Origin: Tubulanus polymorphus
Lineage: Eukaryota > Animalia > Nemertea
DNA: 64,000 bases
Reading direction: 5' to 3'
Assembly (NCBI RefSeq): GCF_964204645.1
Contig: NC_134030.1
Coordinates: 21,846,210-21,910,209 of the forward strand
Shown piece after piece: positions 23,474-52,153 of the stretch. Below the pieces are notes generated by a model. It searched no databases, had not been told where the DNA came from, and worked only from the letters and a program-made list of their open reading frames with translations. Position 1 is the stretch's first letter; each line of letters opens with the position of its first letter. Position numbers and translations under genes: made by a program.

Positions 23474-26400
23474 ATGAACAACTGGATCCGTTTGTTAATT
23501 CTACTGCTGGAAATCTCGTTCAATTCAGAAGCTGCATCGATACGAAATAAGAGAAATACTGGTGAGTTAAAATGATGAACTACTTTTAAACTGCAGCGTC
23601 CGTTTTTATAGACTGGTATTTCAGCACCTGATGGAGTTGTACTGGACAGTGTGAATGTATTACCGGGTACAAGAATATTACGTATATTGTGTATTTGATA
23701 TTTCAGCACCTGATGGAGTTGTACTGGACAGTGTGAATGTATTACCGGGTACAAGAATATTACGTATATTGTGTATTTGATATTTCAGCACCTGATGGAG
23801 TTGTACTGGACAGTGTGAATGTATTACCGGGTACAAGAATATTACGTATATTGTGTATTTGATATTTCAGCACCTGATGGAGTTGTACTGGACAGTGTGA
23901 ATGTATTACCGGGTACAAGAATATTACGTATATTGTGTATTCGATATTTCAGCACCTGATGGAGTTGTACTGAACAGTGTCAATGTATTACCGGGTACAA
24001 ATATATTACTGTCGCAGGAAGGTAAAACTGTTAGTATTACCTGTAAACAGAGCAGCTCTACAGCGACTGGTGTAGAATTCCAGCTACAAGTGTATCATGG
24101 AGGGACCTGGACTGCATTACCTACAGCATCAGCACCAGTTTGGGATATTGTACTTGACGCTGGAAACATCTATAAATGTGTGGCCACTAACTCGGCAGGA
24201 ATAAAGGGAAGTCACATCTATGAATCAGATGTGATCAGTGAGTATGGTGACAATTTGAACTCTAAGAATCGGCTTGTCACGTGATAATTTATTTCTCCTC
24301 TGCAACTGAACCTAATTTCAATATTGCTGGGATAGGCTGAAAATAAGCCATGATTATAATTTCCCACAATCAGTTCAGAAAATGGCGAATAGATCGTGAC
24401 GTAATCTAATTTATGTTTGATCTTCGTTTCGGCGTTAAATTCATTGTTATCTTCAGACAAATTCAAACGTTGACTCTACAAGAACTTATCGTCTTTTCTG
24501 AACTGATTGACAGATCTCTGGTACTGACTCGGATGACAATTACTAAACCAGTAGCCTTCATACATTTACTGTTCATTGTCGGTTATCTGACAATACATGT
24601 ATTTTTGTGCCAAATTTCAACGCTCTTATTCTCTGTGGAAACAAGTCAGCATATCCTTTCATTCAGCACTTATCAAATAATGCTGGGTAAATAGAATAAA
24701 AGTTTCCTGTGCACTTGGTATTTTTTGTATATATTTTGTATTGTAGGTATAAAAATAAATGAAAACCCGTGTAAGCTGCATGAATTCAAACCATCACTAG
24801 CTTGTACTTGTAAAGCCACTAGTAAGATCGGTAATTCAAACATAGCAGTAAAATGGTATGCTGATGGATTTACTGAAGGTTCAACGGATATTGATCAGAT
24901 CCCCGATCAAGGCGTAAATACTCCGATGAAAGATGGAGTTATCAACAGGAATCAGATGCGGTTTAATTTAATGCTGTACGCAATATTGATTCAATGTCGG
25001 TTATGGAAGTATAATGGGATCGAGTTACCGAAACTAACACTTCAAGAACAAATACTACATCAAACTCCAATGAACGTTACGTGTAAGTTGTATAATATTT
25101 TCATGAGAGATTTTTCATACGATATCAGAGTGACAATAATGCATGTTACATCGTTTATTCTATTGGTAACTGCCCATAGTTGGAGATTTAAGAGTTACTA
25201 TTTCATAACGACTGGTGATCATGCCGATGAAATTCTTTCGTTTTAATATTTGGTCCCAAGAAGGTATTTCGAATACTGAAGCGAATTGTTAATAATAACA
25301 TTAAAAGGACTAGAATATGATTGTGCATGAATTTGCTTTTGAAATCGAACCTACTAGAAAACGATTTCACCTTCTATGATTAGGCTTAAGATTTTGAGCC
25401 CACATGGAAAAATTGCAGCGAAATTGGTAAAAATGTTGACATAAAAAGTTTGTCGTCTTCGGGTATTCTTATGGCTATATCAGGGATTTTTAGTTTGTAA
25501 TATGGGACAAAGCTTCTTGAACCGGGACAATAGGATCACGCACAACTCACCAGAACAAAGGATTCTTTTCATGAGTGCGATAGATACGCCACCTATCGTT
25601 GATATGTATTGTTGCAAAAACAAATAAACTATATTACAATATAATTATGTCGGGAGTTACACCGTTATATTTCCGTCGATTCAAATTTCGACGCCCTTGA
25701 TAAACACACATTCCTCGGAGCGAAAGTAATATTTTACCATGTTTTATGGACGGACGTTTCCTCACGTAAATCAACGATTTTGCACCGATCAGTGAAATTG
25801 AAGTGGACAAACATGATATCATCCAAAAATGTATTTGCATCTTTATCTTTCAGATTTTCCCGATGAAATTCAAACACCAGATACTTTCACCGGAGAACCT
25901 GACATTAGAAATGAAGGAGATGTTGTAGAATATACTTGTCGAACAGTGATAGGAAGACCCGATCCTACAGTGATATACCAACAGAAAAGAAGAGGTTCTG
26001 AACAATGGGAGCCAATTCCTGATCCACAACCTCGTAAAGTACCTCTCAAAATGGTTTTAAAAGGTTTTGACACGACCTACAAGTTCAAAGCTGATTTCAA
26101 ACTGCACAATGGAACGTCATTTCGATGTGCTGTAAAGGAGAACCTTACGTTTCCAGAACCTCAGCAATTTAATCCAATCATTGTTTATTGTAAGTAACAG
26201 TTTCTTTTTCGAATTCGAGAAATAAATAATTTTCCCTGCAACAATACAGACCCCAGTGGTAGTACAGACCTATCCACACATATAGCATGTCACAATGTAA
26301 CCATGCTAAGCAGGAACATGGCAGAGTCTCGCGATGTCATCAGGTTCAAATCCCTGCCGAGGGAGGAACGTGGCAGAATCTCGCGATGTCATCAGGTTCG

Positions 26401-28736
26401 AATCCCTGCCGAGGGAGGAACGTGGCAGAGTCTCACGATGTCATCAGGTTCGAATCCCTGCCGAGGGAGGAACGTGGCAGAGTCTCACGATGTCATCAGG
26501 TTCGAATCCCTGCCGAGGGAGGAACGTGGCAGAGTCTCACGATGTCATCAGGTTCGAATCCCTGCCGAGGATGATGGGTCTACTATGACAGGGCTTAAGA
26601 ACTGTGCTAGGTCAGATATAACTTTTACTAATGTTTTGTTTGTTTTTCAATCAGATTTTGCTGCACCAGTTTACAAGAAATCCAGTGAAAATGAAACAAA
26701 TGCAGCGTATATTGTAACAGTTAATAGTAACCCATTGACTCAACAAGTTACATGTGACCCTCCAGCTGTCGTTCAAAAACTATCAACCTATCAGTGGAAT
26801 ATAACGATACCTATCGTAAATAGTACCACAACTGACTATAGAGGGCAGTGTTTGGCTGATGGTATTAATGAAAGGGTCATTAATGTCACTGGTTATCATC
26901 ACGCCCGTCCAACTGATGAACCAGGTAAGATTCCGGGTCACAACTGGGTGAATTCTATCTGATTTTGAACATTAAAATGATTTAATTCCATGAAACATGA
27001 TAAAACTCGAGGCCATCATCTCTTAACTCGAAATCATTTCTACACAATCAAACAATGTACTTACGAAAGTCGTTATTTTGATAAATTGTCACAAAATAAC
27101 CTATTAATATATTTCATAGTCTCAATTTACTAAGTCACATTACTGGAGTTGTCTCTATCATTGGGTCTCATTTTACTAGGTGTAAGTCGTCATTCATTTG
27201 AGTCGTCACAATTCGTATTCGAATCAGCCACCAGTATTTTACCTAACCTGTAACTCAATTAGATTAGTCAGTACAGCGGATGAGTCTTATGGGAAATCCG
27301 TGCGCGATGACGTAATTCTCTGTGTCGTCCGAACTGAATGTATTTTTTGTGAATATATCACATTCAAATATTTCGCAATGATTTAGCATCTTTAACTTTC
27401 TATCTTGAGGCTGCTTGACCCAATCAAGGAACAATTAATTTTCTCCCATTTCAAAAACAACTTATATACTTCATTTAGAGAAAATTTGAGCTTTGAAAGT
27501 TAAGAAGCAGTTACTTTTTGCTTGACCTATTTAATAATTCAATTCAATTGCTGTTGTTTTTATCAATAGTTACAATGGAACTATTTCTAGCTTTATATAA
27601 TTCTATTCAATCGCATCACTGATTTGTTTAAATTTCAGTTCCAGAAGAAGGGACTGGGGGAATAGTGTTTGCTGTAATCAGTATACTGATATTACTGATT
27701 CTGATAATACTGTTTATACTGTGTCTTTTTGGTTGCTGTAAGTTTTACATAAAACCATCATTTAATCTGAAAAACAATGATAAACAAACTGCAGAATCAG
27801 AATACTGTGTTATTTCTAATTGACAGTGCGGTGCAGAAAACCTGATGATGAACTGTGTAGATGTGGAAATTGTAAGTTATGTAATAATTCAAATAAAGAA
27901 AGCTAGAAATTGAAAATAGTGCATAAGGCCGAATGTATTCTAGAGCCCTAAGATAACCAGATACAGTTGATACTCAATTATCTGTCCACATTTTTAATCT
28001 CGGGACCCTAGTTGCGCAGTATCATTCAAAAAGTGTTCGTAAACTATTAATCTGGTCTTAAGTTGTTAGTTCGGCTACAAAACTAAAACTGTCTTTAACT
28101 GGCCTTGAATGTTAGCCATCACTGTGCACATTACAAAACATTTAGTTGAAACACACAATAAAATGATGTTATCTGCAATCGTAGATTTTCCCCTGACAAA
28201 ACCGGTCTCGATAACTGAGAGTTCATGAGGTCTGAAATCAGTCACACTTCTAGATTATGCTTAAAATTGCATACATGGGCTTAAAGAAACAACACAATTT
28301 TGTGTGCTTGCGTTTGACAAAAGATGACGATTCAAAAAATGATTGTATTGTTTTTGTTTTTGTTTTCAGCACTGAATTTCAATAGTATAAGCCGTGAACT
28401 AATGATTTGTAATTGTCGCACCGAGGACTCGTCGGACGATGAACTATGTGTTTGTTGTTGCTGTAAGTGTCATAGAAAAATACCATCGTAGAATCGTAGA
28501 AAGGATTATCGCAAATTAGAATAATTTGTTTGTTTGTTTTTAGTGACTTGCAAATTACCTGCTGCCGATGAACCTGATAATGAGGATGATTCCTCAGATG
28601 AACTGTGTCATTGTTGCTGCTGTGAGTTCTATATATAAACTGATAAAGATTAATAGTCAGTAACTGTAGAATAAACGGTTGTATTATTTTCTATTTGCAG
28701 TGGTGTTGAGAAGGGAGCCGTGTACATGTAATTACT
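23474..28736 (+). CDS. Receptor C1, 5' part: signal peptide + furin site, four Ig-like exons, TM, Cys-rich juxtamembrane exons (no stop reached)
   Basis: Exons 23474-23561 (MNNWIRLLILLLEISFNSEAASIRNKRNT), 23953-24237 (ITC...W...YKC), 24747-25082 (CTC...VKWY...IQC), 25854-26189 (YTC...QWE...FRC), 26655-26924, 27639-27737 (TM GIVFAVISILILLILIILFILCLFGC), 27827-27871, 28370-28462, 28544-28621, 28701-28736. All phase 1, one domain per exon as in IgSF genes. Confidence 0.88.
23622..24000 (+). repeat. 82-bp tandem repeat containing the Ig1 splice acceptor (5 acceptors; 3 in the paralog 63067-63280)
   Basis: ttcag|cacctgatggagttg starts at 23625, 23707, 23789, 23871, 23953; in C2 at 63070, 63152, 63234. 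Confidence 0.95.
26318..26569 (+). repeat. 52-bp tandem repeat (~5 copies) containing a Pol III B box GGTTCGAATCC
   Basis: Unit gtggcagagtctcacgatgtcatcaggttcgaatccctgccgagggaggaac; related sequence at 22843-22890. Confidence 0.9.
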
Positions 28737-29761
28737 GTAAGTTGTATTAACATTGAAAACATTGATGATTAATCCTGCAAAATTAACTGTTATCGTCATT
28801 GGATATTCACGAATTCAAGAATGTTTGGAACTTAGAAGAACAGAATGTTATCATTTCTGGGATTCAGCGCGGGTTGGGTCGTAGTTTCAGATGGCTGCAA
28901 ACGTGAAATGTTGCTACGACCAAACATTCACCGGTTCCGTAAAAATCATTTTGATATAAACCGCCGCCTAGTACCCATAGGAATTAACGCGGAGAAGCTA
29001 CTATGTAACATCTTTCTCTTCACAAATAACGGTGTTTGAAAAAGTATCCATTTTATAATGTTTAGCATCATTCAACTTTCAATCAATTTTCTAGACACAA
29101 TACGCGCATTATTCAGACCAGAATTTAGATGCACGAGACGCATTAAAAATCTAAAGCCAGAATATGCGTAATGTTTATTTATTTTCGTCCGACATCGATC
29201 ACTTTCAGATCTGAATCAGTGCGGTCTAAATAAACCGTCATTTTTATATCTATTACACAGGCAGCATTAATTAGATTATCTAATGGCTAATCAGTAGCGA
29301 ATGAATTACTCGTAGATGCAGTGTCTTGGGTACAGGCTCGATACAAGTCACTGCGGGGTCATCAATCAACGTTGATAGGTTAAGATTACTTGCCTACGTT
29401 AGGTTCTGCATTTTCTCGTTGGGAAGTATCGTTACGTTGTTGGGTGACGATAGTTATACATTATCACATATGCCCGCCGGGTATCGGTAATGAAAACTTG
29501 CGTCCGGTTCCTTGTCCCAGTTACCATTTATTGCGAACTAGAAGAAATTCCGTAAATCCGTGATTCCGAAATAGTACCGGTTTAAACTCAAGAAAGTTAC
29601 GCAGTATCATTGGTTCAATTATCTCATAGCATTAGTATCCATGACTATCTTTAGTGGGTGGCTCCATGAATATCCAAATCACACTGTTTCTTTATTGGGT
29701 TGATTTGTCAGGTGAATGTGCATCATGTAAACAAACAGTATTTCTGTTTTCTAATTCACAG

Positions 29762-32700
29762 TACCGTGTTTGGGTCCGAAATCTAAAGATGTGATTGAAT
29801 TGTTGCGTTGGACAAGTGAAACCTGGTATGAAAAAGGTAAGATTCTCTCACATGATTTACTGCACATATTCTCAGATATCGGTTTGATGATTTTAGGTGT
29901 TGTTTTCTCTTTGTAGATTATGAGAATTGGGTGAAAACACGTGACCACCTGCAGCCAGGTATTTACAGAATTATTAACCCTTTATTTCTATAACATGTAG
30001 AATATCTTGCATGAATACAGTTCATAGTTTTAGAGATCATCCACTAATCATCTGAAAGATACACAACTGATTTGCTTCATTATCAAAACCGTAATTATCA
30101 ATTTAAGTTTATGGTTTGTTAACAACGTAATTTTTGACTATTTTATTGTATGTTTTTGGTAGATGTTTAATACAATTAACTGACAATTATTTCTATCTGT
30201 GAAGCACATTTGTAATAATGGCCTCCTAGATTAACTCACTGGATACAATGGAAACTCGTTTACGCAATGAAATAAACCAAATAATTTGGACCAAGAAACT
30301 TTTAGATTTTTCAGAAACTATTCCATATTCACGTACTAAATCCTGGACTTCACTTGTAGCAAGTGAGGATCCATCAGGTGCAAGGAGGCAATTCCTTGCT
30401 ATTTTTAGGGACTGACCTTTTCGTGAGAAAGAAGAAAAAGCATGTGAAAATCCCTGATAATGTGTTTGCCTAAGCGTTGTTGTCGTCGTTAACCGGCGCT
30501 TTTTTTCGGCAGTCCTCCAGTTCATGGTGTTTCATCGATCGTCCATTGATGTGTTTGGTTGAATGACTGGACTGGTTCCGGGTCAGGCGTATAGTCTGAT
30601 CGTGCCTAGAACGCGTCACCACGCATCTAATTTCAAAACGTTTCCCGCGGGAGGACACCCACTAATTTAACCCTCCCTCAAATCCTGGATCCGCCACGTA
30701 AGATGCGGCAATTGAGGATTCCCATTGAAAATCAACTATACACGAGAAACGTTTTTGGATGTCGTTTTTTCATGTATATTTGTAGCTAATATTTGTGTTG
30801 TTTTGTTTAACAGTTAAAACTGGAGACTTTGAGGTCATTGAAACATTCAGTCCAGGTATATTTGATATTTATTGTAATTTCATTTCAATAAAACAATATA
30901 AACTCAGATAATTCAGTTATAAATCAACTACTTGTTCGTAACGTCGATGAATTCATTTAAACAATTAATTCATTGTCAATTTTTCTTTCTAGAAATTGTT
31001 AGAATAATTGTCGATGTTTACGGAACTGAGAATGATTGGATGATAATGAGAGATAAGGATAAACAAGGTAAGAGGAGTGATGACTCAGTTGCCAGGGTAA
31101 GAGCCAAACCGGCTGATTGGTTTATTGCAACCCGGGGCCGGGTTAATAGACTGGTATTAACTTTAAACCCGGGGTTAGTTTAATTAATTTTCAATTGAGT
31201 TAGCCCCCGGGTTAAAGATAATACCAGTCTATAAAACCGGGTCCTGCATACAATACTGTACCGGAATATAACACTTCCCCGGGCCTCCTATCTTCACCCA
31301 ACAGTAATTCAAACTGTTTGATGCACAGGTTTTTTTTATTATTGAAAAAAATGCTTTCTATATTTCATTTCAGCAATAGCTATCAGAGAATTCATGTTCC
31401 AACAGTTATCACATGATGAAAGTAAGTAATTGTTACCTATAGTTAAAGCTATGAACATCACATGTGCTTTATGTGAATATGCACATATGAATTCAGTTGA
31501 CATGCACTTGTGAGTTATATGCACATGTTCATGTTATTATTTGTTTTACATTCATGAGTAATGCATGCATGTACATGTGAATGATACTTACATGTGAACA
31601 TGTGCATGTGAGTTTTAACTGCGCATATGGTTTGTTAACACGCACATGTGTTTAAGTTTAAGTAGAGTTTGATCAATGTCTATGTATTTTCAGGTGTGTT
31701 AGATTTGGTGAAAGAAATCCTAAGTAAGTTTACGAAACGACTCAGTATTTCCTCTTCAACTCGAATCATCGATTCAAATGTGTTTGTTATTATTTATTGA
31801 CAGGAAAATACGCGAGAATAAACAATTTAAAAACGAAACTATCAAATGAGATCGGTAAGATTTGATTGAATACAGTTATTGATGTATGAGTTTATTGATT
31901 ATTATTCTACTGTCAACTCATTTTGTAAATGTATTACAGATACATTACTGAACAAGAACAGGTCAATAGATGGCGCTGATGCAGTTTACAATAGAGATGA
32001 AGGTACTTTATTATTCACTGTTCAAATGAAATATTCAACTTTGCTGATAGAAATGTAACGAATTCTATTCAACATGGCCGCATGGCAGCCTTTTGGCAAT
32101 AATGAATAAACCTGATAAAAGCGACCAGTTTAAAATTTCATCTTAAACATATCAGACTAGAGCTTCAGAAATACTCAAGTTACAACAAAATTATCAAATT
32201 TACAATTGTTATTTAAGAAATAAGATGTGATACAAAGGGTAATGATACAATATGATACAGAATTTCAATTAAACTAATTTCAAATCTATTTTTTCCGTGT
32301 TTCAGATGTAATTCATGTTAGTTTTATTACGCAATCTAATGAAGAGAAAAGACCCCTGACAGACAAAGAGAAAGAGTTCATCAGAGATGGTCAGTAAAAC
32401 TATGAATTCTATCTCTGAGTTCAATTTTCACATGTAGTTGACTACACGGGTTACCACGAGTCTTAAGAGTGTTTAAAGAACTTACTGGCGAAAATGGCTT
32501 ACTTTTTGGAAAAAAGTAGTGATTTACTGTGTCGCTAGTGTTTAGGATTTATCTGTATTTATCGATTTGCAAAATAAAACGAGCGCCAAAGGGAAACTGC
32601 TCTGCGTGAATCACACTGAGCGTAGGTTTTTTTCGTAGGTTTCAAATCCCCAGTAAACGGTTATTATGAATTTCATATTTTCAGTTGCTTCAGCAGTTGA

Positions 32701-35700
32701 ATCTATTGTTGATTTCTTTGCTAAAATGTCCGGTAGGTTCCATAAATCATTTCAGTAAAAATACTGTGGAGTTTGTTGTGGAATCATTGAATAATTGGTT
32801 TATTTTTACTGTAGATGCTGAATTATGTGAACGAGGAATAGCCAACATTAAACGTAGGTTTTAATTCTCATTTATCCTCAACAGAGTGTATAAAATACAT
32901 GTGCGCTATAATCTACTGTACATGTTGTACATGTCAGTTCTCTGTACATATTCATGTGAGTTCTCTATATACTTACGTTTGTGTTCGCGATCTGTACATG
33001 TACATGTCAGGTCTCTGAAGAATTTGTAAGTTCTGCGGTAAAAACTTTTACTTATATTTCAGCTACTGATGAAATTGCTGGTAAGTTATAATATTCACTA
33101 TGATGTTTAAACTGGTGCTGAGTCTGTTCAATCATAACTGAAATATCGCTGTATCTTTTTATAGAAATGTTTGTGAAAGAAACACTTGATAAAGAAATTA
33201 AACAACAGAATGGTGAGTGTTCAGTTAATCTAGAAATCTATCAGGGGGGGGGGGGTTACAACTGTAAACTGATTACATATTAAACATATTTTGTCTAATT
33301 ACAGAAATACTCGTCACACAAATAGAAAACCAGAAAGTAACTGATAAAACAAAGATAGGTTTGTTATACAATAAACTAATTATCATAATCTATGGTGATT
33401 TATTCAGATGTTGTCAGTAAATCCTGTTAATCAAACTTCTGACATATATGTAAATACAATTACAGATATAGGACTGGCCGACCGGAACCGTTTTGTGTAC
33501 AAAGATGATTGCGGTAAGACTTAAAATATCAAATATCCTTTTATTATTTTTTGCACTTCATGACAAATCGTTTTAGATTTCTGAGGTATGAATAAAACCA
33601 GACATTAGACATGAATTCATCCGCTTTATGGGAAATTCCAGCTTTTATGAAATCCAGATGTATTTGGATAAAATTCTAGTTTGAACTGATCTGGTCAATA
33701 TTCATGTTATTCTATTCATGTATTCATTTGTAGAATCAGTTTTATTGGCGTCAAGTTTGCAGAAATTAGAAGAGAACAAACATTCTACTGAACTAGATAG
33801 AAGTAAGTGTAAACTTTCTTTGTTTGTATGTATGAACCTGTTTTTTGTGCTCTGTGCAAATGGAAATTTTGTGGAGCAATAAATTGTTATTGTAATTGTA
33901 TGAAACTATTCGGTCACATTTTGTATTGATATCAATATTCTTCATGATTAAAATCAGTTGCGTAGTTACTCGGTTAAATTGTCGGTTCAAAATGAATCAT
34001 AGCATCATAGTGAAGGATGTCCTAGTTGGCTCTGACAATATCTATGTAACTTCTTCCCTAAAGAATGGCTTCGGGTGGACTTCTGCCAAATGTTCCATTA
34101 CAGGAAATTAGTTTTTGATCTGATAATTTAGTTGTTTATTTCAAACAAGAATGTTATGCAGGAACAAACTTAATCGTTAGCTTTTTGGTTGTCACGCTAT
34201 CCAAGAAAGGGTGGCTCTCACAATATTCAGACCATTTCATCAGCAGGATAACTGAGGGTGGATTTTTGTAAAAATGTTGCATTTTTGGAAATTGTTTTGT
34301 TATTTTGTTTAATTTCATTGTTCAACTATATTTTCAGGTATCTATCTAATAAGCCGAGATGTTTTAGGTAAGAACTGCTAGTAACAAACTATGATCATTG
34401 ACGTCTAGGGTCGAAAGCAGACCCTTTAAAAACAAATATCAGCATAAAAACTTAAAAGAGAATTTTTAGTCATTTTTCGTTTATATTTCTCTTGATTTTC
34501 TGATATGTCAGAAACTTGTTGGATCGAATTTTTATCAGATATTTAAAAGAGGTTTAGAATAGAAGTGTTATGCTGTGTTTGATCTAACCTCATTGTGAAT
34601 TATGTTCTTTTTTTAGAAATGAAATTGAAAATCGCAGTTTTTGAATCTATCAAAGGTAAGACTTCATATAGATTGCATCAGAATCAGCCGGGTTTATTCC
34701 ATCATTTGCCAAGATTCAACCTGAGCTCAATTTGTTTTCTGAGAACTCAATTTCTGTTCTGATGTCATTTTCCTGGTAATTTATCTTGACGAATCACTTT
34801 TAGAATTGTACGCTGAACGAGCTGAAAGATTTCAGAATGAACTCAAAGAGAAACTGAAACAAGAGGAAAATGAAGAGAGAAAAAATGAGGAGGAATTGAA
34901 CAGAATAATTCACAGTTCAGTTTGTCAGGCGTTTAAATCTATCACTGATATGAATGAAAGTAAATATCGATTTTATATCTCAAATTATACATGGACTTAA
35001 CATGTCACATATTATGTGTTAATGAATGCACATGTAACATGTTCATGTGAATGAATACACATATAACATGCTACATGTTACATGTGAATGAATGCGCATG
35101 TAACATGTTCATGTAAATTAATGCACATGTTGCATGTTTAGTTCTCTGATATATTTCAGAAACTCTGATGGATAATAAAGTTGTAGGATATGGAGGTTTG
35201 TATATAATTCACATGTTTCAATCACAAACCAGTTTTTATCGTTAATAATCTGTTTGATTTTCTCTATTTATATTTCAGTGAGTCCAGAAGAGATAAGTGA
35301 GTTCTGATTGATATTTATAAATATTCCCAGTACAGTAGACTGCGCGCTTGCCTCTGATTTCATGTTGTAATTCGTCATATTTACCTGTTTATAAGTTGCA
35401 GTGATTTTCTATATTGATAGATTCTAAACTACGTGAATTAGCCGATAAAGAGTTTGAAGACAGAACAGGTACTGTACACATTACAAAGTGTGAAGACGCT
35501 TCAATGGATTGATTTGATATCGGTTACCCTAGATCCCGAGTGTCGTACATAGAAAGCAAGCTAACCAGTAGACCATAGACGTATAAACTAGTCTAGTTTA
35601 TACGCTCATGAGTAGACCAATAGAACTGTTTAGTGTTTATACAGCTTGTCCTATATGGGTAACGCTGTGACCTTTTTGTGCCCAAAAAAAGTTCATTTTC

Positions 35701-38700
35701 GCCCTGATTTCCGAGACCTGTAGTTTCCGAACGGTTTCCCATTTTTCATTGAAGTTCGTTATGGATATTTTTCGAAGGGCTCTTAAACATATCAGATGGG
35801 CTGACGTTGAATAATGGAATTTAGTAATGTTTTAAATTGTATTGATGTTTATGATCAATGTTTATTACAGTCGGTATAAAGACACTTGAAGAAATATTGC
35901 CTCTAAAACTGAATATACCGCACCAAATCAGCACTGGTAAGTGACTACAGTGAAACTGTATGTTTGAATTGGAATTCAATACAGTAAACTTTAAATTTGT
36001 CGAGAATCAGGAAAATCGCAAACTTAAGGAATCTTTATTTGAATTTAATCTAATTTGTAGACTTGTATTCAGCTGGACGAGATCCAGTTATTCTGCCGAA
36101 TCGAGCAGGTATTGTATAAGTCCGTAAAAAACTTAAGATAACCAGTTTAATTCCATTCCATAATCATGCCGTTATCAAACGCCAACATATTTCAGGGAAT
36201 AAATCCCGCAAATCTAAATTCAGTGGAAATACCATTCTTTATAATGCCTTGTACTTCATCGGTCCCAACTGTTGCATCATGAAGGACTTTCACTGTGAAC
36301 AAAATTTGAGTTTTTTAAGAGCATTAGCCTGAAATATTCTGCAACTGATCTTTGTCCCTGAAAGGACGATTAATTCTTCTAAGTTCTTGTAACGAATCCT
36401 TAAACTGCTCGTTATTAAAACCAGAAAATGCTCTTCCGTCATATACCTAATTGTGAGGTTAAGGCCCTGATAATGGTGTTCTAACCCTGGTTTACTGGTA
36501 TTTTTGATGTCAAAATGCAAACTTAAAGCAATAACGGTTTTAAAATGAAACCGCACTCAATGAATGTTGTGTCTATGTTTGCTGTTTTTATGTGAATTTC
36601 AGTGGAATATTTCAAGGATGAATTCATTAGCGCAATACAATCTGATGAATTATTGAAAACTGCTACTCGAACTGCTTTAGTTAACAGTAAGTTACATCTA
36701 CAGTAAACTACATTTACATCTACAGTAAACTACATTTACATCTACAGTAAACTACATTTACATCTACAACAAACTACATTTACATCTACAGTAAACTACA
36801 TTTAATACATCTACAATCAACAATTAGATACATTTATTCACTAAGATTGTCAATCATAGAAATTTGTTTGTGGTTTTTTAGAATCAAGTAAAATCAACGA
36901 ATTGTTGAGGAAAGAAAAGTCGAATGGTAATATTGTTTGATGAAATGTGGATAAGATGTTTGCTTTTACGAACCGAAAAATAATTCAAACGTTTTTCTTC
37001 TATTTCTTAGTTAATAGAATTTATGATGAAGTGAAAAATAGAATAGAATCAATGTCTACAGGTTTGTATTTTAATGATTTTCTATCAATTCTTGCATTTA
37101 AATGTCGGATATATTTCGATCCTCGTGTTGAGGTTTCTTTTCATAAAGCATATTATAATATATCATATTTCGCATAACGCAGTGGCTACTCGTACGAATA
37201 ATTCCGTAGGCTATTCGTACGCACCCGTCGGATAGCTCTGGAATTATGTGTACGGGAAGGGATAGGGTTAGGGTAAGGTGAGGCTATATGTAGTTAAAAC
37301 ATTCGACCGACCGTCAGCGAGCTCGGTGGTCTAGTGGTACGATGCCGGCTAGTAATTTACTAGCCCGGGTTCGAGTCTCGCTCAATCCGCTCTATTTTTC
37401 TCTAACTCTATTCTCCACACTTTCCTTGAATTTTTTGCTAAGTCGTGCACCTCTGTACGCATGCGCGGCGTTAATCGGCCAATCAGCGACAGTTATTAGC
37501 GTACAGATCCTAGTCCCGTACGAATAGTCTCCAGAGTAATCCGTACGGGTCCGTACGAGTAGCCACAGCGTTCTCATAAACATGTCATATCATATTATAA
37601 ACCACTAGCATATACAATAATAATATATAAAATGTGATTTTGAAGGTGATGAGTTTTGTTTTACTTTTTATCACGGATTGATTCATTGCTGAATTTACGT
37701 TATTATTTCTATTTGTGATTTCAGAGGAATTAAATGAACGAGGAATCGTAGTTTATAGAAGTGAGTAAAAGTCAATTTGTCTGATTTGAATTCTAATCTG
37801 TTCATCAATTCCATAGTTTTCCTGCTCCATAGTTACCCTGATCCCATATACTCCTAACAAGAGACTCCCAACACTAGAATCATAACCCCTCAGTTTTTTA
37901 AATTCAGATTTAGATCAAATTAAGTAAGAATTTTATAGTAAAAGTGAACTGTATGAATTTATCTGTTTAGATCTACTCAATGTTTATATAAGAATTATTG
38001 TTGTTTTCTGTTTTTTTTCAGTAAAAGATGAAATAGCGAGTAAGTACTGATAACAACTTCCATGTTAAAGTTTAGATAAATATATATATATGTCATGTCC
38101 TGTTTTAAATAGTAGTGGTTCTTATTAAAATCCAGTGAAACCGTTTTACAGATGATGAAAATACTTCCTTCAAGACTAAAGGAAGGATTGTGAAAGAAGA
38201 ACATGTTTCCCTCTCCCTGCAGTAATCTATTGTGTTTATTCTGTTTCAGTGTTTCATATCAGACCAATTATTGCAAACAGAATCCAAACGGAATTTAAAG
38301 GTGAATACATTGTGTTGACTGTTAAGTGTTTTAATTAACAAATTAAATCGGTACCGAGAGTAAGAGTGGTCGACTGGTACTGAGTAAGGGTGGCGGTCGA
38401 CTGGTACTGAGTAAGGGTGGCGGTCGACTGGTACTGAGTAAGGGTGAAGGTCGACTGGTACTGAGTAAGGGTGAAGGTCGACTGGTACTGAGTAAGGGTG
38501 AAGGTCGACTGGCACTGAGTAAGGGTGAAGGTCGACTGGTACTGAGTAAGGGTGAAGGTCGACTGGTATTGAGTAAGGGTGAAGGTCGACTGGTACTGAG
38601 TAAGGGTGAAGGTCGACTGGTACTGAGTAAGGGTGAAGGTCGACTGGCACTGAGTAAGGGTGAAGGTCGACTGGTACTGAGTAAGGGTGAAGGTCGACTG

Positions 38701-41700
38701 GCATTGAGTAAGGGTGGCGGTCGACTGGTACTGAGTAAGGGTGGCGGTCGACTGGTACTGAGTAAGGGTGGCAGTCGACTGGTACTGAGTAAGGGTGGCA
38801 GTCGACTGGTACTGAGTAAGGGTGAAGGTCGACTGGTACTGAGTAAGGGTGAAGGTCGACTGGTACTGAGTAAGGGTGGCGGTCGACTGGTACTGAGTAA
38901 GGGTGAAGGTCGACTGGTACTGAGTAAGGGTGGCAGTCGACTGGTACCGAGAGTAAGGGTGAAGGTCGACTGGTACTGAGTAAGGGTGGCGGTCGACTGG
39001 TACTGAGTAAGGGTGAAGGTCGACTGGTACTGAGTAAGGGTGGCAGTCGACTGGTACTGAGTAAGGGTGGCAGTCGACTGGTACTGAGTAAGGGTGGCAG
39101 TCGACTGGTACTGAGTAAGGGTGAAGGTCGACTGGTACTGAGTAAGGGTGAAGGTCGACTGGTACTGAGTAAGGGTGAAGGTCGACTGGTACTGAGTAAG
39201 GGTGAAGGTCGACTGGTACTGAGTAAGGGTGGCAGTCGACTGGTACTGAGTAAGGGTGGCAGTCGACTGGTACTGAGTAAGGGTGAAGGTCGACTGGTAC
39301 TGAGTAAGGGTGAAGGTCGACTGGTACTGAGTAAGGGTGGCGGTCGACTGGTACTGAGTAAGGGTGAAGGTCGACTGGTACTGAGTAAGGGTGGCAGTCG
39401 ACTGGTACCGAGAGTAAGGGTGAAGGTCGACTGGTACTGAGTAAGGGTGGCGGTCGACTGGTACTGAGTAAGGGTGAAGGTCGACTGGTACTGAGTAAGG
39501 GTGGCAGTCGACTGGTACTGAGTAAGGGTGAAGGTCGACTGGTACTGAGTAAGGGTGAAGGTCGACTGGTACTGAGTAAGGGTGAAGGTCGACTGGTACT
39601 GAGTAAGGGTGAAGGTCGACTGGTACTGAGTAAGGGTGGCAGTCGACTGGTACTGAGTAAGGGTGAAGGTCGACTGGTACTGAGTAAGGGTGAAGGTCGA
39701 CTGGTACTGAGTAAGGGTGAAGGTCGACTGGTACTGAGTAAGGGTGAAGGTCGACTGTATTTTGTAGGAGGATATTTGACGCTGTAGCAACATAAATAGT
39801 TTACATCATCAGTCGATATCACAGTTGTTTCTAATCAACAATGTATAATTACAGATTCACTAGAGACTGTTTTAGAAGAGAAATGTAAAGAGGCTCTCAA
39901 TTGGTGGCCATCAAAACACTGGGCATATGATATATTTCGCGCGAGTAAGTTCACAGTGAAATCAGTTTGTAATTTATAATAGAATTCTATTGTATAAAAA
40001 CTTGTCTATTGTTTATTACATATAGTGTCTGTACTCAGTGAATTTACCAGTACAACTTTAAAGATAAACACAGGTTATTGGAAACAAGTCAAACAATGTT
40101 TCGGTAAATAATAAATTCATGTTTCACTACTGATTCTTTTTCAATGATCTGATTTTAAGGATGATCAATAATTGTTTGTTTTGTTTGAATAGGAGATGAA
40201 ATTGACAGTGAAACAAATACAACTGAACTGACAGAAATAGGTGAATATCAATACAACAACATAATATTTCCAGATTAACAAAAATTATTTCGAATTTTGC
40301 GTTGAATTCATTGAAGATCGAAATTCATCAATGTGATCAGATCTTTAGAGGCATCTGTTTTGGTTCATGGGTTACACAGTATTATCAGTTGAATTCTCGG
40401 CTCAAAATCAATCATAGCTTGAAAAAACCATGTTTAGAGTGTGAAACTAAGAGGTGTTTGAAAATCGTCACTCTTTGGTAACATTTTGTATAGATGTGAA
40501 AATTTAATTTGTTTATAGTTGATGGATGTTTGGGTGAATGCATTAAAACAATGAGTGATAAATGGAACACTGGTGAGTACCCCTCATATAATGGCTGATA
40601 AGGGCCATGAAAATATTTCCTGACCAAAAATTATTTCGTCATGAAAAATAATATTCCATCGAAAAATGTTCGTAAGTAAAAATAATTTCGTTGTGAAAAA
40701 TAAATTCTCATCAAAAATATTCATAAGCTAAAATAATTTTATTAATAATCGCCTCCTAAATATAGGCGTGAGAAAAAATAATTCCGCTATGAAAAATAAA
40801 TCGCCTTCCTTCAAAATATATTCCGATGACAAGATATTTTTGCAGCGTAAAAATAATTGTGGGTTTTTCCGTTAGTGCACGCGTGCGCGCACGCGCTAGT
40901 CGCTAGTCACCCCTGATCTAGCCCTAAGTATAGTATAGTGGTACACACTGTGTGCATAATATACTTAAACTACACGGGCACAGCTCTCACTTACACATGA
41001 ATCAGGGTACTACGGTAGAGCTTTGGTTTATTTTTATCCTGAAATTTTTTGATGAGTCCTTGTGAACTAACTTTAGGAAGGGTGGGATGGTGGTGATGTC
41101 GTTGGGTCCATGTGAACACAAATTATGTAGAGGCATTTAAATGAGGCTATTCAGAGTTGAAACAAACTGCAAAGTGAACAAGGTTAAGCGACAGTTTTCT
41201 ATGAGGTTTAATTTCATGTTTTGTTATTTCTAGGCGATTTTAAGAACCGCAAGATGATTGTAGGGAAAGGTAAATATTCCGTATATAATTCCCTTAGAAC
41301 CGGTTCTATAGTCATCATTACAATTGAGACCAGTCTAAGACGGTCTCGGTTCTACAGCCAATAAACAACTTAGAACCAGTCGTAAGATTTAAGACGAATT
41401 TTGGATTCAATTTTCGATTATGGAGCCGGCCACTGGTTATATCAATGAAAAACCAATTTCATCATGAAAATCTGTTTGATTTTCTATCCATTTATATTTC
41501 AGCGAGTCCAGAAGAGATAAGTGAGTTCTGAGATGAGTAGAATTTATTTTAGATTTTCACTATTTTGATCTATAAAGTGATTGTTATGTATCCAGTGACA
41601 GGTATCTGTGTGAACTGGTGACCAAAATCACAAATAATTAATTAATTGTCTTCACTAAAATAGAAACCAGTTGTCAATATCATCCCATGGTGGACCTAAA

Positions 41701-42785
41701 ACCTTAAGTCGCACTTATCTGTTTATCAGACAGTTGTAGTCAGCGCTTGCCTCTGATTTTGTGGAACCAGTGAATAATAGTGACGTCGAATTACAAGTCA
41801 CACTAGTTTGTTTAAGTCAGTGATTTTCTATATTGATAGATTTTAAACTACATGAATTTGCCGATAAAGAGTTTGAAGAAAGGAAACGTGAGAGAGGTAC
41901 TGTACACATTACAAAGTGTGAAATTCAACATGTTTTATGTTTTAAATCTTATTGATGTTTATTATCAATGTTTATTACAGTCGGTAGATTTAATCAAATA
42001 AAGACACCTGATGATCACATAAAGACACAAGATGCATCATTCGAATGGGTAAAGACACTTGAAGAAATATTGCCTCTAAAACTGGATATACCGGCACAAC
42101 TCCGCTCTGGTAAGTGACTATACTGAAAAACTGCATGTCTGAATTTGAATTCAATACAGTAAACTCTGCCTGGAATAAACTGTTATTATTTCACCGAGTT
42201 GAGAATCAGGCAAATCCTTTTATCAAAAAACTTTCAGTATTTTCAAAATGTTAAGATTCCATTTAAATTTCTGTAGATTTAGATTCAGCTGGACGAGATG
42301 CAGTTATTCTGCCGGATCGAGCAGGTATTGTATAAGTTAAGTCTGTAAAAACTTAAGGTAACCCGTCACTGCCCTCATAACGCCAACATATTTCAGGGAA
42401 CAAATTCCGCAAATCTAAATTCAATGGAAATACCATTCTTTATAACGCTATGTATTTCATTGGTCCCAAAAGACTTTAACTGTGATAACAAAATTTTCAA
42501 AGGTTTTTTATGCCTGAGATATTCTGCGACTGATCTTTGTCCCTGAAAGGACGAATAATTCTGCTAAGTTCTTGAAAATCCTTAAACTGCTCGTTAGGAA
42601 TACCAGAAAATGCTCTTCTATCATATGCCGGATTTTGAGGAACAGACCCTGAAAATGGTGTTCTAATCCAGGTTTACTTTTCTTTTGTATGTCCAGAAGA
42701 GAATGTCTTTTAGTAATAATAATAATTAATAATATTAATAATAATTAATAATATTAATAATAATAATAATAATAATAATGATGAT

Positions 42786-42821
<36 letters not shown>

Positions 42822-45800
42822 TATTTAAAGCGACAACAGTTTTAAATTCAGAAACCACACTCAATGAATCCTGTGTTTGCTGTTTTTATATGAATTTCAG
42901 TGGAATATTTCAAGGATGAATTCATTATTGCAATACAATCTGATGAATCATTGAAAACTGCTACTCAAACTGCTTTAGATAACAGTAAGTTACATCTACA
43001 GTAAACTGCATTTGTGTTCATCTGTAAGACTACATTTACATCTACAGTAAACTAAATTTACATCTACAGTAAACTACATTTATATCTACAATAAACTACA
43101 TTTTCATACATCTACAATCAACAATTAGATACGTTTATTCACTAAGATTGTCAATCATAGAAATTTGTTTGTGGTTTTTTTAGAATCAAGTAAAATCAAC
43201 GAATTGTTGAGGAAAGAAAAGTCGAATGGTAAAATTGTTTGATAAAATGCGGATGCGATGTTTGTTTTCACGAACCGAAAAATAATTCAAACGTTTTTCT
43301 TCTATTTCTTAGTTAATAGAATTTATGGTGAAGTGAAAAAGAGAATAGAATCAATATCTACAGGTTTGTATTTTCATGATCTTCTATCAATTCTTGCATT
43401 TAAATGTCGGATATAATATATCCGACATTTAAATGCGAAATATTATTTCGATCCTCGTGTTGAGATTTTTTTGTCATATAGCATATTATAATATATCATA
43501 TTTCTCATAAACATATCATATCATACCACTATCATATACAATGTCATCAAGTACATATATAAAATACGTATATCACATATCATATCACGTCATATCATAT
43601 CATTTATGCTTGTAAAATGTGATTTTGAAGGTGATGAGTTTTGTTTTATTTTTATCACGAATTGATACATTGCTGAATTTACGTTCAACTTCTATTTGTG
43701 ATTTCAGAGGAATTAAATGAACGAGGAATCGTAGTTTATAGAAGTGAGTTAAAGTCAATTTGTGTGATTTGAATTCTAATCTGTTCATCAATTCCATATC
43801 CTGCTCCATAGTTACCCTGATCCCATATACTCCTCACAAGAGACTCCCAACACTAGCATCATAACCCCCCAGTTATTTTTAATTCAGATCTAAATCAAAT
43901 TAAGAATTTTATAGTAAAAGTGAACTGTATGAATTTATCTGTTTAGATCTACACAATGTTTATATATGAATTATTGTGTTTTCTGTTTTTCAGTAAAAGA
44001 TGAAACAGCGAGTAAGTACTAATAACAACTGAATCGTTAAAGTCTTCATAAACAGATATTTGTCATGTCCAGTTTTGAATAGTAGTGGTTCTAATTGAGC
44101 GCTAAATCCAGTAAACCGTTTTACAGATGATGAAAATACTTCCTTCAAGACAAAAGGAAGGATTGTGAAAGAAGAACATGTTTCCCTCTCCCTGCAGGAA
44201 TCTATTGTGTTTATTCTGTTTCAGTGAAACACATCAAACCAATTATTGAAAACAGAATCCAAACGGAATTTAAAGGTGAATACTGTTGACTGTTAGGTGT
44301 TTTAATTAACAAATTAAACCGGTACCGAGAGTACGAGTGGTGGTCGACTGGTCCCAAATAAGGGCGAAGGTCAACTGGTACTGAGTAAGGGCGAAGGTCG
44401 ACTGTATTTTGTAGGATATGTGACGCTTTAGTAGCATTATTAGTTTACATCATCAGTCAATGTTGTAATAGTTTCTAATCAACATTGTATATTTACAGAT
44501 TCACTAGAGACTGTTTTAAAGGGGAAATGTAAAAAGGCTCTCAGTATGTGGTCATCAAAACACTGGGCATATGATATATCTACTGCGTGTAAGTTCACAG
44601 AGAAATCAGTTTGTGATTTACATTAGAATTCTATTGTATAAAAACTTGTCTATTGTTTATTACATATAGTGTCTGTACTCAGTGAATTTACCAGTAGAAC
44701 TTTAAAGACAAACACGGGTTATTGGAAACAAGTCAGAGAATGTTTCGGTAAATGATTAATTCTTGTTTCACATCTGAATTGTTTTAGTGATCTGATTTTT
44801 TATGTTTTGAATAATAATTATTTGTTCTGTTTGAATAGGAGATGAAATTAACAGTGAAACAAATACAACTGAACTGACAAAAATAGGTGAATATAAAAAA
44901 ATTCAGATAAACAGAAATATAGTATTGAATTCATTGAAGATGAAATTCATCAATTTAATCAGATCTTCACAGAGACCTGTTTTGATTCAGAGCAATTTGA
45001 ACTAATTTCAAACTAAGAGCGCTTGAAAGTCCCGACCCTTTGGTCACAGTTTGAATCAATGTGAAAATTTATTTTTGTTTATAGTTACTGAGTGTTTGGG
45101 GGAATGCACTAAAACAATGCGTGATAAATGGAATACTGGTGAGTACCCCTCATGAGTACTTCATATGAGTACTCCTCATGAGGACCTCTCATAAGTACGT
45201 CTCTTGAGTACTTTTCATGAGTGAGTACCGTATTCAAATAACTATCAGCCATCTTGAGTACGTTAAGTAGAGGACTCAAATACAAATCGGAAACTGAGTA
45301 CCCGAGTACCATATAGAAACTATCAGAAGTTTAGTGAGTAACACAAAATAACTAATCTTCTTTGAGCTTTAATTTCATGTTTTAATATTTTTAGACGATT
45401 TCAAGGAGAAATTCAAGCTCTACGGGATGATTGTAGATTCAGGTAGATATGAAAATTCATTCACAGGCAAAAGATGAGACTCAAGCTTGAATTGAAATAA
45501 ACTGGTCCCTAAATCGCCATCAAACTGTTTAATAAAGTTTTCTAACTTAAATTCTGTCTCTCAGTTTCAGTTCAGTTTAGTTTATTCACTCCACAAGTTA
45601 TAATAACATTGCACAGAGCACAAAAGTAGCGCATAGATTACAGCATATTACAAAAAATATAATGATAGTATTAATAATAATTATATTTATAATAATAACA
45701 ATTATGATAATAGTAAAAATAATAATACTAATAGTGATAGCAATAATATAATACTTATAATAATAATTGTAATTATAATGAAATTATAATGCAAAAGATG

Positions 45801-48800: not shown

Positions 48801-51800
48801 TTGTCCTTCAGACCAGTGCTGCCCTCTAACGTATGAGATGTAACTATTCCGTTATTTGTATTGTAGAAGAGATTGTGAATGAGGTAAAACACGCACATTT
48901 TCAAACTCGCGAATTTAAAAGTAAGTTTCCAATAAAATCAGAACCTGTTTTAACAACACGAACTCAAATATTAATATCTGTATGTATTGTATTATTATTT
49001 ATAGAATCAGTTGAGACTGCAGTGAATGAAGCTATCGAGAATTCAGGTAATTAAATATTCTTCATAAGTTCGCATTCTGTGTTTGAATTGAGTTCAGTTT
49101 GGCTGAAGGTGCTTCTTTAAATGTATAAACTTATATCTTACAGAAAAATCACAATACGGCAAAAAACCAAACTATGAAGCTGCAGGTTTGTAAAACTCTA
49201 ATTTCTGTAAATGAATTTGACCTGATGTGGTTGCTGCCCTGGACCGAATTTCATAGATTGGGGGGGGGGGGCAAAATATTCCCCTGGACCCAGTTTTATA
49301 GACTGGTATTATCTTTAACCCGGGAGTTAACTTAATTGAAATTGAATCAAGTTAGCCTCCAGGTTAAAGATAATACCAGTCTATAAAACCGACCCCTTGG
49401 CCCTGGAAACCTTTTGAAAATTGTCAGTAGTTAACATAGTTTCTCAATGTTGCTATGGTGGTTGTCAGCCTGTTGAGGATTTTCCCCAAGAGGATCATTC
49501 ATTTATTACGTATGCAAAAAATTCAGAAAAAGCCTCGAGTAAGCTGATAATAGTTAGATCGAGTCTATTATGTAGAAAAAGAGTGGATGAAAATGTAGTC
49601 ACGTGATGAAATCTATTCGGAGCAGAATTGAATTTAAAAAGTCATTAAAGTGCGCACAATACGCATTATTATTTACCCCTCCCCCTTTTGTACACAATTG
49701 TATGCTGTATATTTAATAAGACCCCTTTGTACAATTTGATTTTTGAGTTTAACCCCCTCCCTACCCAAAATGCGTACCTAATAAATGGGTGACCCCTTAA
49801 AAGGTAACTTTGAAGCCGCCCTATGAAACTAGGCCCATGATGATGATGACCACAAAGATGAGATAATTTTCAGTTGCTTTCCATTCAGAATTTTATTCTA
49901 TTATTTCAGTGAAATGGATAGTTGATGAAATGAAAGGTAAATTGACCAGTAATAATACTAAATTTGGTGAAAGGAGGTCTCTGTAACCAGGAAGATTATG
50001 TAATATTCTGTTCATATATCTTATTATTATTTCAGAGAAATGGATAGCTGTTGAAATTAGGAGAGGTAAATTGACTGATAATAAATACTCAGTTTCATAA
50101 TGAGTTTGTGTTGATGTTTACAAAAGAATTCTAATTTCAGGTTTCACGGTTAAACCATCTGAAACATCATATGGTATGTAATATAATTGTTATATACAGT
50201 TGATTATAACGGTCGCTGTCATCGTTTTTGTCACTGTCACTGTTCACTCAACACGAACATTTTTCAGAGAACAAATTTGTAAAATCAAACTCAAATTCAA
50301 TGAAAATACCATTTATAAATCGCCAAAATCATTATGAAGTCATATTTTTCATTGGTCCCCATAGTGGCTTGACTATATTTATACATGTATCTTGTGTGGA
50401 TGCCTCATCAGTCAGTCAACTGGGCGGGAAATTGAGTAACAATTCACTAAATATCCTGATGTTTTTTTCAGAACGTAATGAATTTGCTGAACGTGCACGA
50501 GAAAAAGGTAATGAATAAATTATGAGTGTTAAAATTGATGTTATCGATTTTGATAATGTTTTATAATGTTAAACGTAATTTAATTTCTATTTCAGTAATT
50601 AAAAAATCAAGAAATTTGATGGATGAGATACGTGCTATAACAGATAAAAGTAATCAATATTTACTTCTATAAACATTTTACTGACTAATATTTCCATATT
50701 CATGAATTCATGTTTCCACATTTATATATAACGTGTCATATGGTCCCCAAACCGGGAAATCAGGAATTTCAGAATATTCTTTAAATTCATTTCGCGCTTC
50801 AACTTTCTTCGGCAATCTTTCCTGAAAATCATCAACCAATCACCAGTAAAATGACGTCACTGTAGTGTGTGATGTTATCTGCTTAATTTCCATCTGAAAT
50901 GAAAAATCACCCATGAAATACTCGGGTTTATTGACTTCATGTAATTGTGAGAACTATCCATAAATTCTGTTTTGAGTTCGATCACAAACTTGTTTGGTCT
51001 TTACTTCTTTACATTTGAAGTAGATCTGATGTTATATGTGAATGATATTGCTGTTTATAGTTTGGATGCATCAGTTTTTCAAGAATATTTCTTTTCATTT
51101 TCAGAAAAATTTTAAAAAAGCCTGGTTTCCTGGTATAGTTCATACAAAATTTTCATTTTTTTCAGAAATATTTTATTTTATTTTCAGAAAAATTAAAAGA
51201 TCTCGGTTTCCTGGTAGATGATTCGAGTAAGTAAATTATACAGTCATCACTTTAGGATTTAAACCATAATCAAATCACAATTAAGTTTGGGATGAAATTA
51301 AGTTTCGTGTTCGTTGATGAGAATCTGATGTATGATTAAACCGGTTTAATCTGGATTACTGGCGGGACACCGGGATGAAATTCATGTAGTTTGAGAAATC
51401 CAGATTTAAAATCGTATTCCATGAGATACTAGTTGATAATTAAATAAAGATTAGTAACCGAATCGAATCTGGATTAAACTGATCTCTTTCCCGCATGGCA
51501 TTCATCGATCTACCGATCTATGTTTTCGGTAGATCATTAAACGTCAGTTCATTCCTTTGTCGGAGATCTCATAAATATGTATGTGGTGTAAGGAACACTT
51601 TGGACTTAATAGAACACCCAGAAAAAATCAAAGCTAATTCTAACTGAATCAGGGGTGGAAATAGTTGAGGTATTATTAACCATTGTCACTGTTAACAGTA
51701 AAGCCGTAATTAGTTGAATTTTCAAGTGGTTGTTCATTTTATGAAACAGACTGTAGCGGGTGATATATAGTTGTATAAAAACAGTTACAAGCTGAACACA

Positions 51801-52153
51801 TCTAAAACAGAGTAAACTCTAGGGGCCACTGATAAAGTATTGTGAATATAAGTTAAAGTTGACGGGTATCTACATTTAGGGAGTGTGCAGTTGTATTTGG
51901 TGTTTGGTTTATATTGTACATTTTGTATATTTTTATAGAAGTTACTCATACAAGTAATGAAACTGCTGGTGATCGTAGATCAAGTATTGACCAGACATCG
52001 AGTAGTGGCGTTGGGCCACCTGGTGGTGATATAGTGAAATATGAAAATGAACCTAAAAGTGGCTGTAGTCAAAGTGCTGCTGATGATAGTCACACAAGTG
52101 ATACCGTACCGAGTGGTGATCGTGAGCGGGGTGATGGTAGTACAGTAGTCTAG
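29762..52153 (+). CDS. Micro-exon chain (copy 1), ~60 exons, ~1,100 aa, ending ...GDGSTVV*; probable continuation of receptor C1
   Basis: Phase-1 exons: 29762-29836, 29917-29958, (30315-30362 possible), 30814-30855, 30993-31067, 31374-31421, 31694-31723, 31804-31854, 31940-32002, 32306-32389, 32685-32732, 32815-32853, 33063-33080, 33165-33212, 33305-33358, 33466-33513, 33734-33802, 34338-34367, 34617-34655, 34804-34959, 35160-35195, 35279-35296, 35421-35468, 35871-35936, 36061-36108, 36603-36686, 36882-36926, 37011-37061, 37725-37760, 38022-38039, 38250-38300, 39855-39944, 40026-40103, 40193-40240, 40519-40572, 41234-41269, 41503-41520, 41840-41896, 41981-42109, 42277-42324, 42901-42984, 43184-43228, 43313-43363, 43708-43743, 43994-44011, 44225-44275, 44499-44588, 44670-44747, 44839-44886, 45085-45138, 45395-45442, 48867-48920, 49005-49046, 49144-49185, 49910-49936, 50036-50065, 50141-50173, 50472-50507, 50596-50649, 51188-51226, terminal 51939-52153. 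Exons from 35160 onward have paralog support; earlier ones rest on splice signals and frame only. Confidence 0.82.
31133..31245. mobile_element. Short palindromic MITE; second family member at 49285-49397
   Basis: atagactggtattaactttaa / ttaaagataataccagtctat inverted arms at two non-paralogous sites. Confidence 0.75.
37176..37572. mobile_element. MITE with 21-bp TIRs, 5-bp TSD and an internal tRNA-like segment
   Basis: aacgcagtggctactcgtacg / cgtacgagtagccacagcgtt; flanks cgcat/ctcat; empty site tttctcataaac at ~43501 in the sister cassette; A/B boxes at 37327-37379. Confidence 0.85.
38350..39757. repeat. 27-bp minisatellite (gagtaagggtgaaggtcgactggtact)n, ~52 copies, intronic
   Basis: Directly visible; ~3 units at 44323-44403 and ~1 at 7840-7866 in paralogous introns. 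Confidence 0.97.
45480..48800. mobile_element. ~3.3-kb composite insertion (probable LINE and MITE fragments) in an intron
   Basis: The paralogous intron 11082-11168 is only 87 nt. The insertion has a LINE-tail-like end at ~45570, a decayed minus-strand coiled-coil frame (IETLLQEILQKISILPEVNEKVDRMTTSL) and short repeat arrays at 47470-47920. Confidence 0.6.

Follow-up and report, generated by a model that had tools for sequence, protein, structure and literature searches.

Receptor C (LOC141906847), an immunoglobulin (Ig) receptor of the nemertean Tubulanus polymorphus, was identified in a 64,000-nt stretch of the genome (NCBI RefSeq assembly GCF_964204645.1, contig NC_134030.1, positions 21,846,210 to 21,910,209; hereafter the window, in whose numbering coordinates are given unless in Mb or kb). 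Comparison of the gene copies indicated that the four-Ig receptor part and a long chain of small exons behind it almost certainly form a single gene, in which the chain encodes most of an intracellular tail of about 1,180 amino acids (aa). Receptor C was considered a probable immune or self/non-self recognition receptor (probability of roughly 55%), namely a NACHT-less member of a family in which some sisters end in NACHT-LRR.

The exons were found by reading the sequence and by a splice-site scan, the joined coding sequence was compared by script only, and sequence searches used single exons or database proteins, not the joined model, as queries. The joined coding sequence (23474-52153, plus strand) contained 70 exons and 4,959 nt, and its only stop codon came directly behind STVV, the last of the 1,652 encoded aa. 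It was identical, letter for letter, to XP_074652383.1 (LOC141906847, isoform X1, Tubulanus polymorphus), an automated RefSeq model of an uncharacterized protein with no function assigned, and agreed with the single gene of about 70 exons and 1,650 aa that the initial annotation had proposed. Isoform X2 differed from X1 solely by the absence of exon 43708-43743.

The order of signal peptide, furin site, four Ig domains, transmembrane (TM) segment, Cys clusters and tail was recovered, with each part located in the sequence. Exon 1 (23474-23561) carried the ATG, in agreement with the start of XP_074652383.1, a putative signal peptide read by eye, and an RNKR motif that suggests furin-type cleavage. 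The Ig-like domains were assigned to the exons 23953-24237 (Pfam Ig_2, E 6e-5, under the curated cut-off), 24747-25082 (Cys/Trp pattern and Atlas feature neighbours), 25854-26189 (CD80-like C2-set type, weak Pfam C2-set_2) and 26655-26924 (read from the sequence). For the Ig fold, both Pfam matches stayed under the cut-off, the weak PDB matches were nearly all to the Ig superfamily, and Ig neighbours of the ectodomain in the Atlas scored 0.87-0.89. The TM exon (27639-27737, hydropathy peak 3.66) supplied the sole membrane-spanning stretch of the mature protein (residues 442-472; tail maximum 0.93) and was followed by four Cys-rich juxtamembrane exons (27827-27871, 28370-28462, 28544-28621 and 28701-28736; 18 Cys in 91 residues). 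Behind a phase-1 intron of 1,025 nt (28737-29761), which contains an unused candidate exon at ATG 29666, the tail comprised an N-block of 20 phase-1 symmetric exons (t02-t21, 29762-35195), two copies of a 15-exon repeat block (t22-t36, 35279-41269; t37-t51, 41503-45442, including the exon skipped in X2), an end block of nine exons (t52-t60, 48867-51226) and a terminal exon of 215 nt (51939-52153) that is rich in Ser, Asp and Gly. Two AATAAA sequences at 52483 and 52598 (52483-52603) are candidate polyadenylation signals in a presumed 3' untranslated region. At the other end of the gene, the acceptor and first codons of Ig1 lay inside an 82-nt tandem repeat (23614-24009 and 63067-63290), present in five copies in receptor C and up to nine in the paralogous copy cA, which produces a row of near-identical decoy acceptors; the last of the row is taken by RefSeq.

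The union of receptor and chain was examined at the intron between them. As had been claimed from the sequence, the receptor part was open to its last clear exon (28701-28736), which ended in a phase-1 GTAAGT donor, and the chain began about 1 kb further on the same strand and in the same phase, with its first exon at 29762. All 7 copies in 21.66-21.92 Mb, including the neighbouring copies C2 and copy 0, kept the order Ig-TM-chain, and each had a RefSeq model that joins the Ig-TM part to the chain; RefSeq isoform sets are usually built on transcript alignments. In copy cB the first chain exon lay 159 nt behind the TM exon, which left no space for a second gene, and both the Cys-rich exons and the ATG-29666 stretch were absent; this stretch was likewise missing from cA, where the gap was 374 nt. 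The use of ATG 29666 as the first exon of a separate chain gene was thus rejected, in line with the earlier view that the chain has no first exon of its own. Chain exon t20 had 18 matches in the genome, and for 15 of them a close match to Ig3 was present 7-12 kb upstream on that strand. Sequencing runs across 27550-33540 (5,991 letters) were DNA-like in X1-X3, covering introns without splice joints, and X4, guessed to be RNA, gave no coverage.

An arrangement of two genes, the first encoding a short-tailed Ig receptor that ends past 28736 and the second, with its start near ATG 29666, a cytosolic helical protein, would be in keeping with the stop that is reached within at most five codons on reading past 28736, the one AATAAA at 29229, and the existence of a short-tailed paralogue (P0005). 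It was judged highly improbable, given the loss of the ATG stretch from two copies that keep the chain, the 159-nt gap in one of them, the joined RefSeq models in 7/7 copies, and a density of AATAAA in the intron 28737-29761 no higher than the background of the chain introns.

The internal chain comprised 59 exons, all flanked by AG/GT, all in phase 1 and all with lengths in multiples of 3 (18-156 nt, median 48; median intron 213 nt). The term micro-exon used in the initial annotation held for the run of small symmetric exons but not for strict microexon size, since 6/59 were at most 27 nt and 39/59 at most 51 nt long; most are better described as small exons. Similar exons in the tail belonged to the collinear 15-exon block, which had been duplicated once. 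The only adjacent pair with at least 40% identity was t55/t56 (49910-50065), a copy-specific local duplication, and degenerate partial copies were also seen just 5' of t60 (51084-51226). An older short repeat, hinted at by the exon pairs t12-13 and t29-30, was rejected on a profile comparison probability of 6%.

Skipping any one tail exon would preserve the reading frame, and RefSeq isoforms of several paralogues drop single tail exons, as isoform X2 of receptor C does. These observations would fit combinatorial skipping within one gene as the main source of diversity, yielding many intracellular isoforms, and the system had been presented earlier as the reverse of Dscam. That framing was not borne out. 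In Dscam1, diversity comes from arrays of paralogous exons that exclude one another in the transcript, and the comparison of exon similarities found no tandem arrays of this kind in the tail of receptor C, where the alike exons are parts of the duplicated block and not neighbouring alternatives, and t55/t56 is the one similar pair that lies side by side. The longest annotated isoform carried all 59 chain exons, only 1-4 isoforms were annotated per gene, and those of the paralogues mostly stood 1-2 tail exons apart, or else differed in the TM exon or in slightly displaced acceptors. Combinatorial skipping as the chief source of diversity was therefore regarded as quite doubtful. As the differences between paralogues were larger than those between annotated isoforms, the symmetric phase-1 exons would be chiefly the units in which one gene comes to differ from another, with splicing contributing small variants. 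Two further kinds of annotated variation were observed. RefSeq isoforms of two paralogues (P0064 and P0066) lack the TM exon; their products, ectodomain plus tail, would be secreted or lumenal. At the locus of P0055, P0059 and P0060 (C6 22260095-22285616, minus strand), which encodes up to 12 Ig domains, a TM segment, part of the chain and NACHT-LRR, isoforms varied by whole Ig cassettes, and the larger annotated splice variation of the family is accordingly extracellular.

The helical blocks accounted for about 1,030 aa of the tail. Protein database searches returned no homologue of the tail outside Tubulanus polymorphus, and neither a Pfam family nor, by PDB sequence search, a solved relative was found. 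AlphaFold models of tail pieces were helical throughout with low confidence (pLDDT 39 and 45). Foldseek gave no match with these models, and VIA matched generic helical bundles (best Z 7.1); as the fold searches depend on models of such confidence, their misses do not demonstrate a new fold. The helical Atlas neighbours GBP and Sey1, at 0.76-0.78, were within chance and were set aside. The chain exons of the seven copies contained no real stop codon, against about 41 expected under neutrality at the synonymous rate, which indicated that the reading frame of the tail is under selection. Omega estimated by counting was 0.66 (0.51-0.86) for the Ig part, 0.70 for the N-block, 1.19 (0.91-1.60) for the repeat block and 1.47 (0.99-2.37) for the end block, and the corresponding codon-model values by maximum likelihood were 0.65, 0.82, 1.35 and 1.49. 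Under the codon model, omega departed from 1 in two parts only, downward in the Ig part and upward in the repeat block (2dL 5.4). Because gene conversion among paralogues can bias omega tests, the tail was taken to be fast-changing, and positive selection is a possible cause only.

The C-terminus of receptor C is likely a class I PDZ-type end. Class I PDZ ligands have the form x-S/T-x-V at the C-terminus and are typical of membrane receptor tails. The terminal exons of receptor C (215 nt, STVV) and of copy 0 (125 nt, GTQV) differed in length as reported earlier, and across eight genes the exon encoded about 40 to 80 aa with in-frame indels, with T at -2 and V at 0 invariant between varying neighbours. 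Conservation of the PDZ-binding end, as claimed in the initial annotation, was thus found in 8/8 genes that use this exon and did not extend to the NACHT-less chain genes as a whole, in which T-x-V occurred in only 8 of the 13 annotated; the other five had different ends in RefSeq. With 14/41 invariant columns in the alignment, chance alone would make a chosen pair of columns invariant about 1 in 8 times, so that the retention of T-x-V is suggestive only. The terminal exon had 10 genome matches, all in the array at 21.7-22.1 Mb. Its origin from a linker exon in front of NACHT received weak support (shuffle p 0.006, on low-complexity sequence) and was not accepted.

The Ig3 exon had 24 matches at 73% identity or more in the 268-Mb genome, and the receptor family, which is lineage-specific, has about 24 members, some of which end in NACHT-LRR. 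With the same ectodomain, the chain was followed by a Ser-rich end in receptor C and by NACHT-LRR in P0055 (P0056 being a partial model); in P0001, P0004 and P0071 the Cys stretch was joined to NACHT-LRR without a chain, and P0005 and P0008 had short tails. NACHT was detected in P0001 and P0004 by Pfam (E 3e-14) and by precomputed annotation in P0055, P0056 and P0071, together with weak LRR_14 matches under the cut-off (E 0.0013 to 0.035) in the NACHT-bearing paralogues. In these the t60 exon was followed by the NACHT-LRR exon. On the minus strand of C6, Ig3 lay at 22.285 and 22.277 Mb, the chain at 22.268-22.265 Mb and the NACHT exon at 22.261 Mb; on C9 the same elements were at 306, 314-317 and 320 kb, and a third locus with chain and NACHT was on C19. 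These three loci were established from match coordinates and RefSeq proteins. No NACHT match was found across 21.66-22.12 Mb, the tandem array that holds the window, and P0047 had no Walker A motif. Receptor C itself lacks NACHT and is not an NLR by domain content.

Tails have thus been swapped among the paralogues of this young tandem family. The paralogues carried one to three repeat blocks and differed by rearranged junctions and by frame-preserving exon loss through splice-site decay, with c1 lost in three copies, c4 in C2 and t18 in cD, and the Cys-rich exons wholly or partly gone in some copies. In the tail tree, which has no outgroup, 2 NACHT-bearing and 13 NACHT-less sequences separated with support of 99/95, and the ectodomain tree was mostly unresolved. 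Cytosolic NLRs of the same NACHT clade (P0072-P0081; matches on C8, C9, C32 and C56) showed, by eye, short N-termini with repeated RHIM-like motifs (VQIG type), although a Pfam search of them gave no RHIM match. As these N-termini precede NACHT, the chain would occupy the slot in front of NACHT.

In the array, gene B alternated with receptor C in the manner of a paired-receptor cluster. Both copies in the window (17284-20642 and 54780-58093, plus strand) encode one Ig domain (54% like Ig3 of receptor C), a TM segment and a tyrosine-motif tail, and the tail showed YxxM repeats and a terminal LYSYATV. The tandem pairing with this receptor was counted in favour of an immune role, as was the part that Ig-TM-NACHT receptors play in sea cucumber immunity (PMC8699970). 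If receptor C is such a recognition receptor, a ligand bound by its Ig domains outside the cell would cluster it; at the membrane it may be anchored or organised by the Cys-rich stretch, lipidated or metal-binding, with the helical blocks as a possible scaffold or oligomerisation surface. In the NACHT-bearing sisters these blocks would lead into an NLR signalling switch. In the NACHT-less receptor C they would end in a PDZ anchor held by a PDZ scaffold, and beside the signalling members the protein may serve as a sensor, a regulator or modulator, or a decoy. Phase-1 symmetry of the exons would let blocks be duplicated or lost among gene copies without a frameshift. Several points weigh against this reading: the immune role was assigned by association only, receptor and chain are linked by genome comparison and automated annotation, no homologue, no Pfam family and no confident structure came to light for the tail, and the trees do not tell a loss of NACHT from a gain.

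The same architecture could belong to a receptor for adhesion or junctions with no immune role. Its tail, under loose sequence constraint, would then be a helical spacer of spectrin type that connects to a PDZ scaffold. A C2-set Ig ectodomain combined with a PDZ-type end, the all-helical prediction with its generic three-helix-bundle matches, and bootstrap intervals of tail omega that span 1 would suit such a protein. The family of about 24 tandem members, its NACHT-LRR sisters and the pairing with tyrosine-motif receptors were counted against it, as were the recent origin of the paralogues and the failure to find an orthologue elsewhere, and an adhesion role was considered unlikely. The tail blocks might instead be intracellular bait for pathogen effectors, comparable to the integrated decoys of plant NLRs and guarded by the NACHT-bearing paralogues. 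The elevated omega of the repeat and end blocks beside the low value of the Ig part points that way, and so does the position of the blocks directly before NACHT, where the cytosolic members have their RHIM-like motifs. Yet gene conversion can inflate these values, whose bootstrap intervals include 1, and a decoy should resemble a host protein, whereas the tail resembles none known; bait was accordingly regarded as a rather remote option. A reading that goes beyond the preferred one of receptor C as a recognition receptor is speculative and unlikely; in it the family would be an animal cell-surface NLR network of sensors and executors, with the fast-evolving helical blocks of NACHT-less members, an undescribed domain type, oligomerising with the NACHT-LRR paralogues or being guarded by them. 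If this were true, modular evolution exon by exon, perhaps with regulated skipping, would diversify the receptor inside the cell more than outside.

The literature search found no paper on LOC141906847 or its receptor family, and several known systems were compared. Receptor C resembles arthropod Dscam1 as an Ig receptor with very many exons and a potential for splice diversity, but its exons are sequential parts of one polypeptide and not exclusive alternatives. AjNLRC4 of the sea cucumber is an Ig-TM-NACHT membrane receptor (PMC8699970, PMC13133943), and like the NACHT-bearing paralogues of receptor C it combines extracellular Ig with intracellular NACHT in one membrane protein. It has two TM segments and no LRR, whereas the nemertean paralogues have one TM segment and an LRR-like end (weak Pfam) and receptor C has no NACHT; the likeness is one of architecture and does not imply homology. 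Anthozoan NLRs are likewise predicted to be membrane-anchored, but by three to four TM helices and with no Ig ectodomain (PMC3879445). The Alr receptors of Hydractinia are clustered, single-pass and Ig-like, with one domain per exon, tails that diverge more than the ectodomains, and spliced TM and tail exons (PMC9546547), and all these traits recur in the receptor C family. In Alr proteins domain 1 is of the V-set type, the spacer resembles Fn3 and the tails carry ITAM/ITIM motifs; receptor C has a helical tail of about 1,180 aa, and no homology was seen. A scan for ITIM-like motifs after the TM segment of receptor C gave no match (ITAM was not scanned separately), and tyrosine motifs are present in the neighbouring gene B. 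The micro-exon genes (MEGs) of schistosomes, which share long runs of short symmetric exons, encode secreted products from exons of 3-81 nt with long introns (10.1101/2023.06.21.545858); receptor C is instead a predicted membrane protein with an intracellular helical tail, exons of 18-156 nt and a median intron of 213 nt. These comparisons placed receptor C outside Dscam-type arrays, NLRs and MEGs, and in its probable mode of action it came closest to the members of a variable cluster of recognition receptors.

Variable Ig-receptor clusters and Ig-TM-NACHT proteins were each known separately, and the gene model was present in RefSeq. Not found described were one ectodomain joined to tails of three types (NACHT-LRR, helical blocks with NACHT-LRR, and helical blocks with a PDZ-type end), and a 59-exon tail without homologue that changes faster than the ligand-binding part. 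The array is a candidate recognition locus of nemerteans and clearly illustrates how symmetric exons in phase 1 drive modular evolution on the intracellular side.

Receptor C is flanked in the window by two paralogues on the plus strand, copy 0 upstream (LOC141906693, 1-14554; 3' part of the tail and the terminal exon with GTQV) and C2 downstream (LOC141907029, 63067-64000; Ig1 region), whose TM exon also precedes a chain. Elsewhere in the genome, the RefSeq model of P0013 (LOC141911244) combines a ubiquitin hydrolase domain with an Ig3-like one near the C-terminus and may be a fused model. An Rfam search of the window gave no match at the gathering threshold; tRNA-like stretches resembling the heads of short interspersed elements were noted by eye at 37318-37390 (intron) and 53300-53390 (intergenic). 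Further repeats comprised tandem 69-nt units at 12960-14054, within the last intron of copy 0, and minisatellites with units of a 14-nt type in copy 0 (4809-6924), 21 nt between genes B and C (21909-22434) and 27 nt in the intron after t31 (38350-39757).

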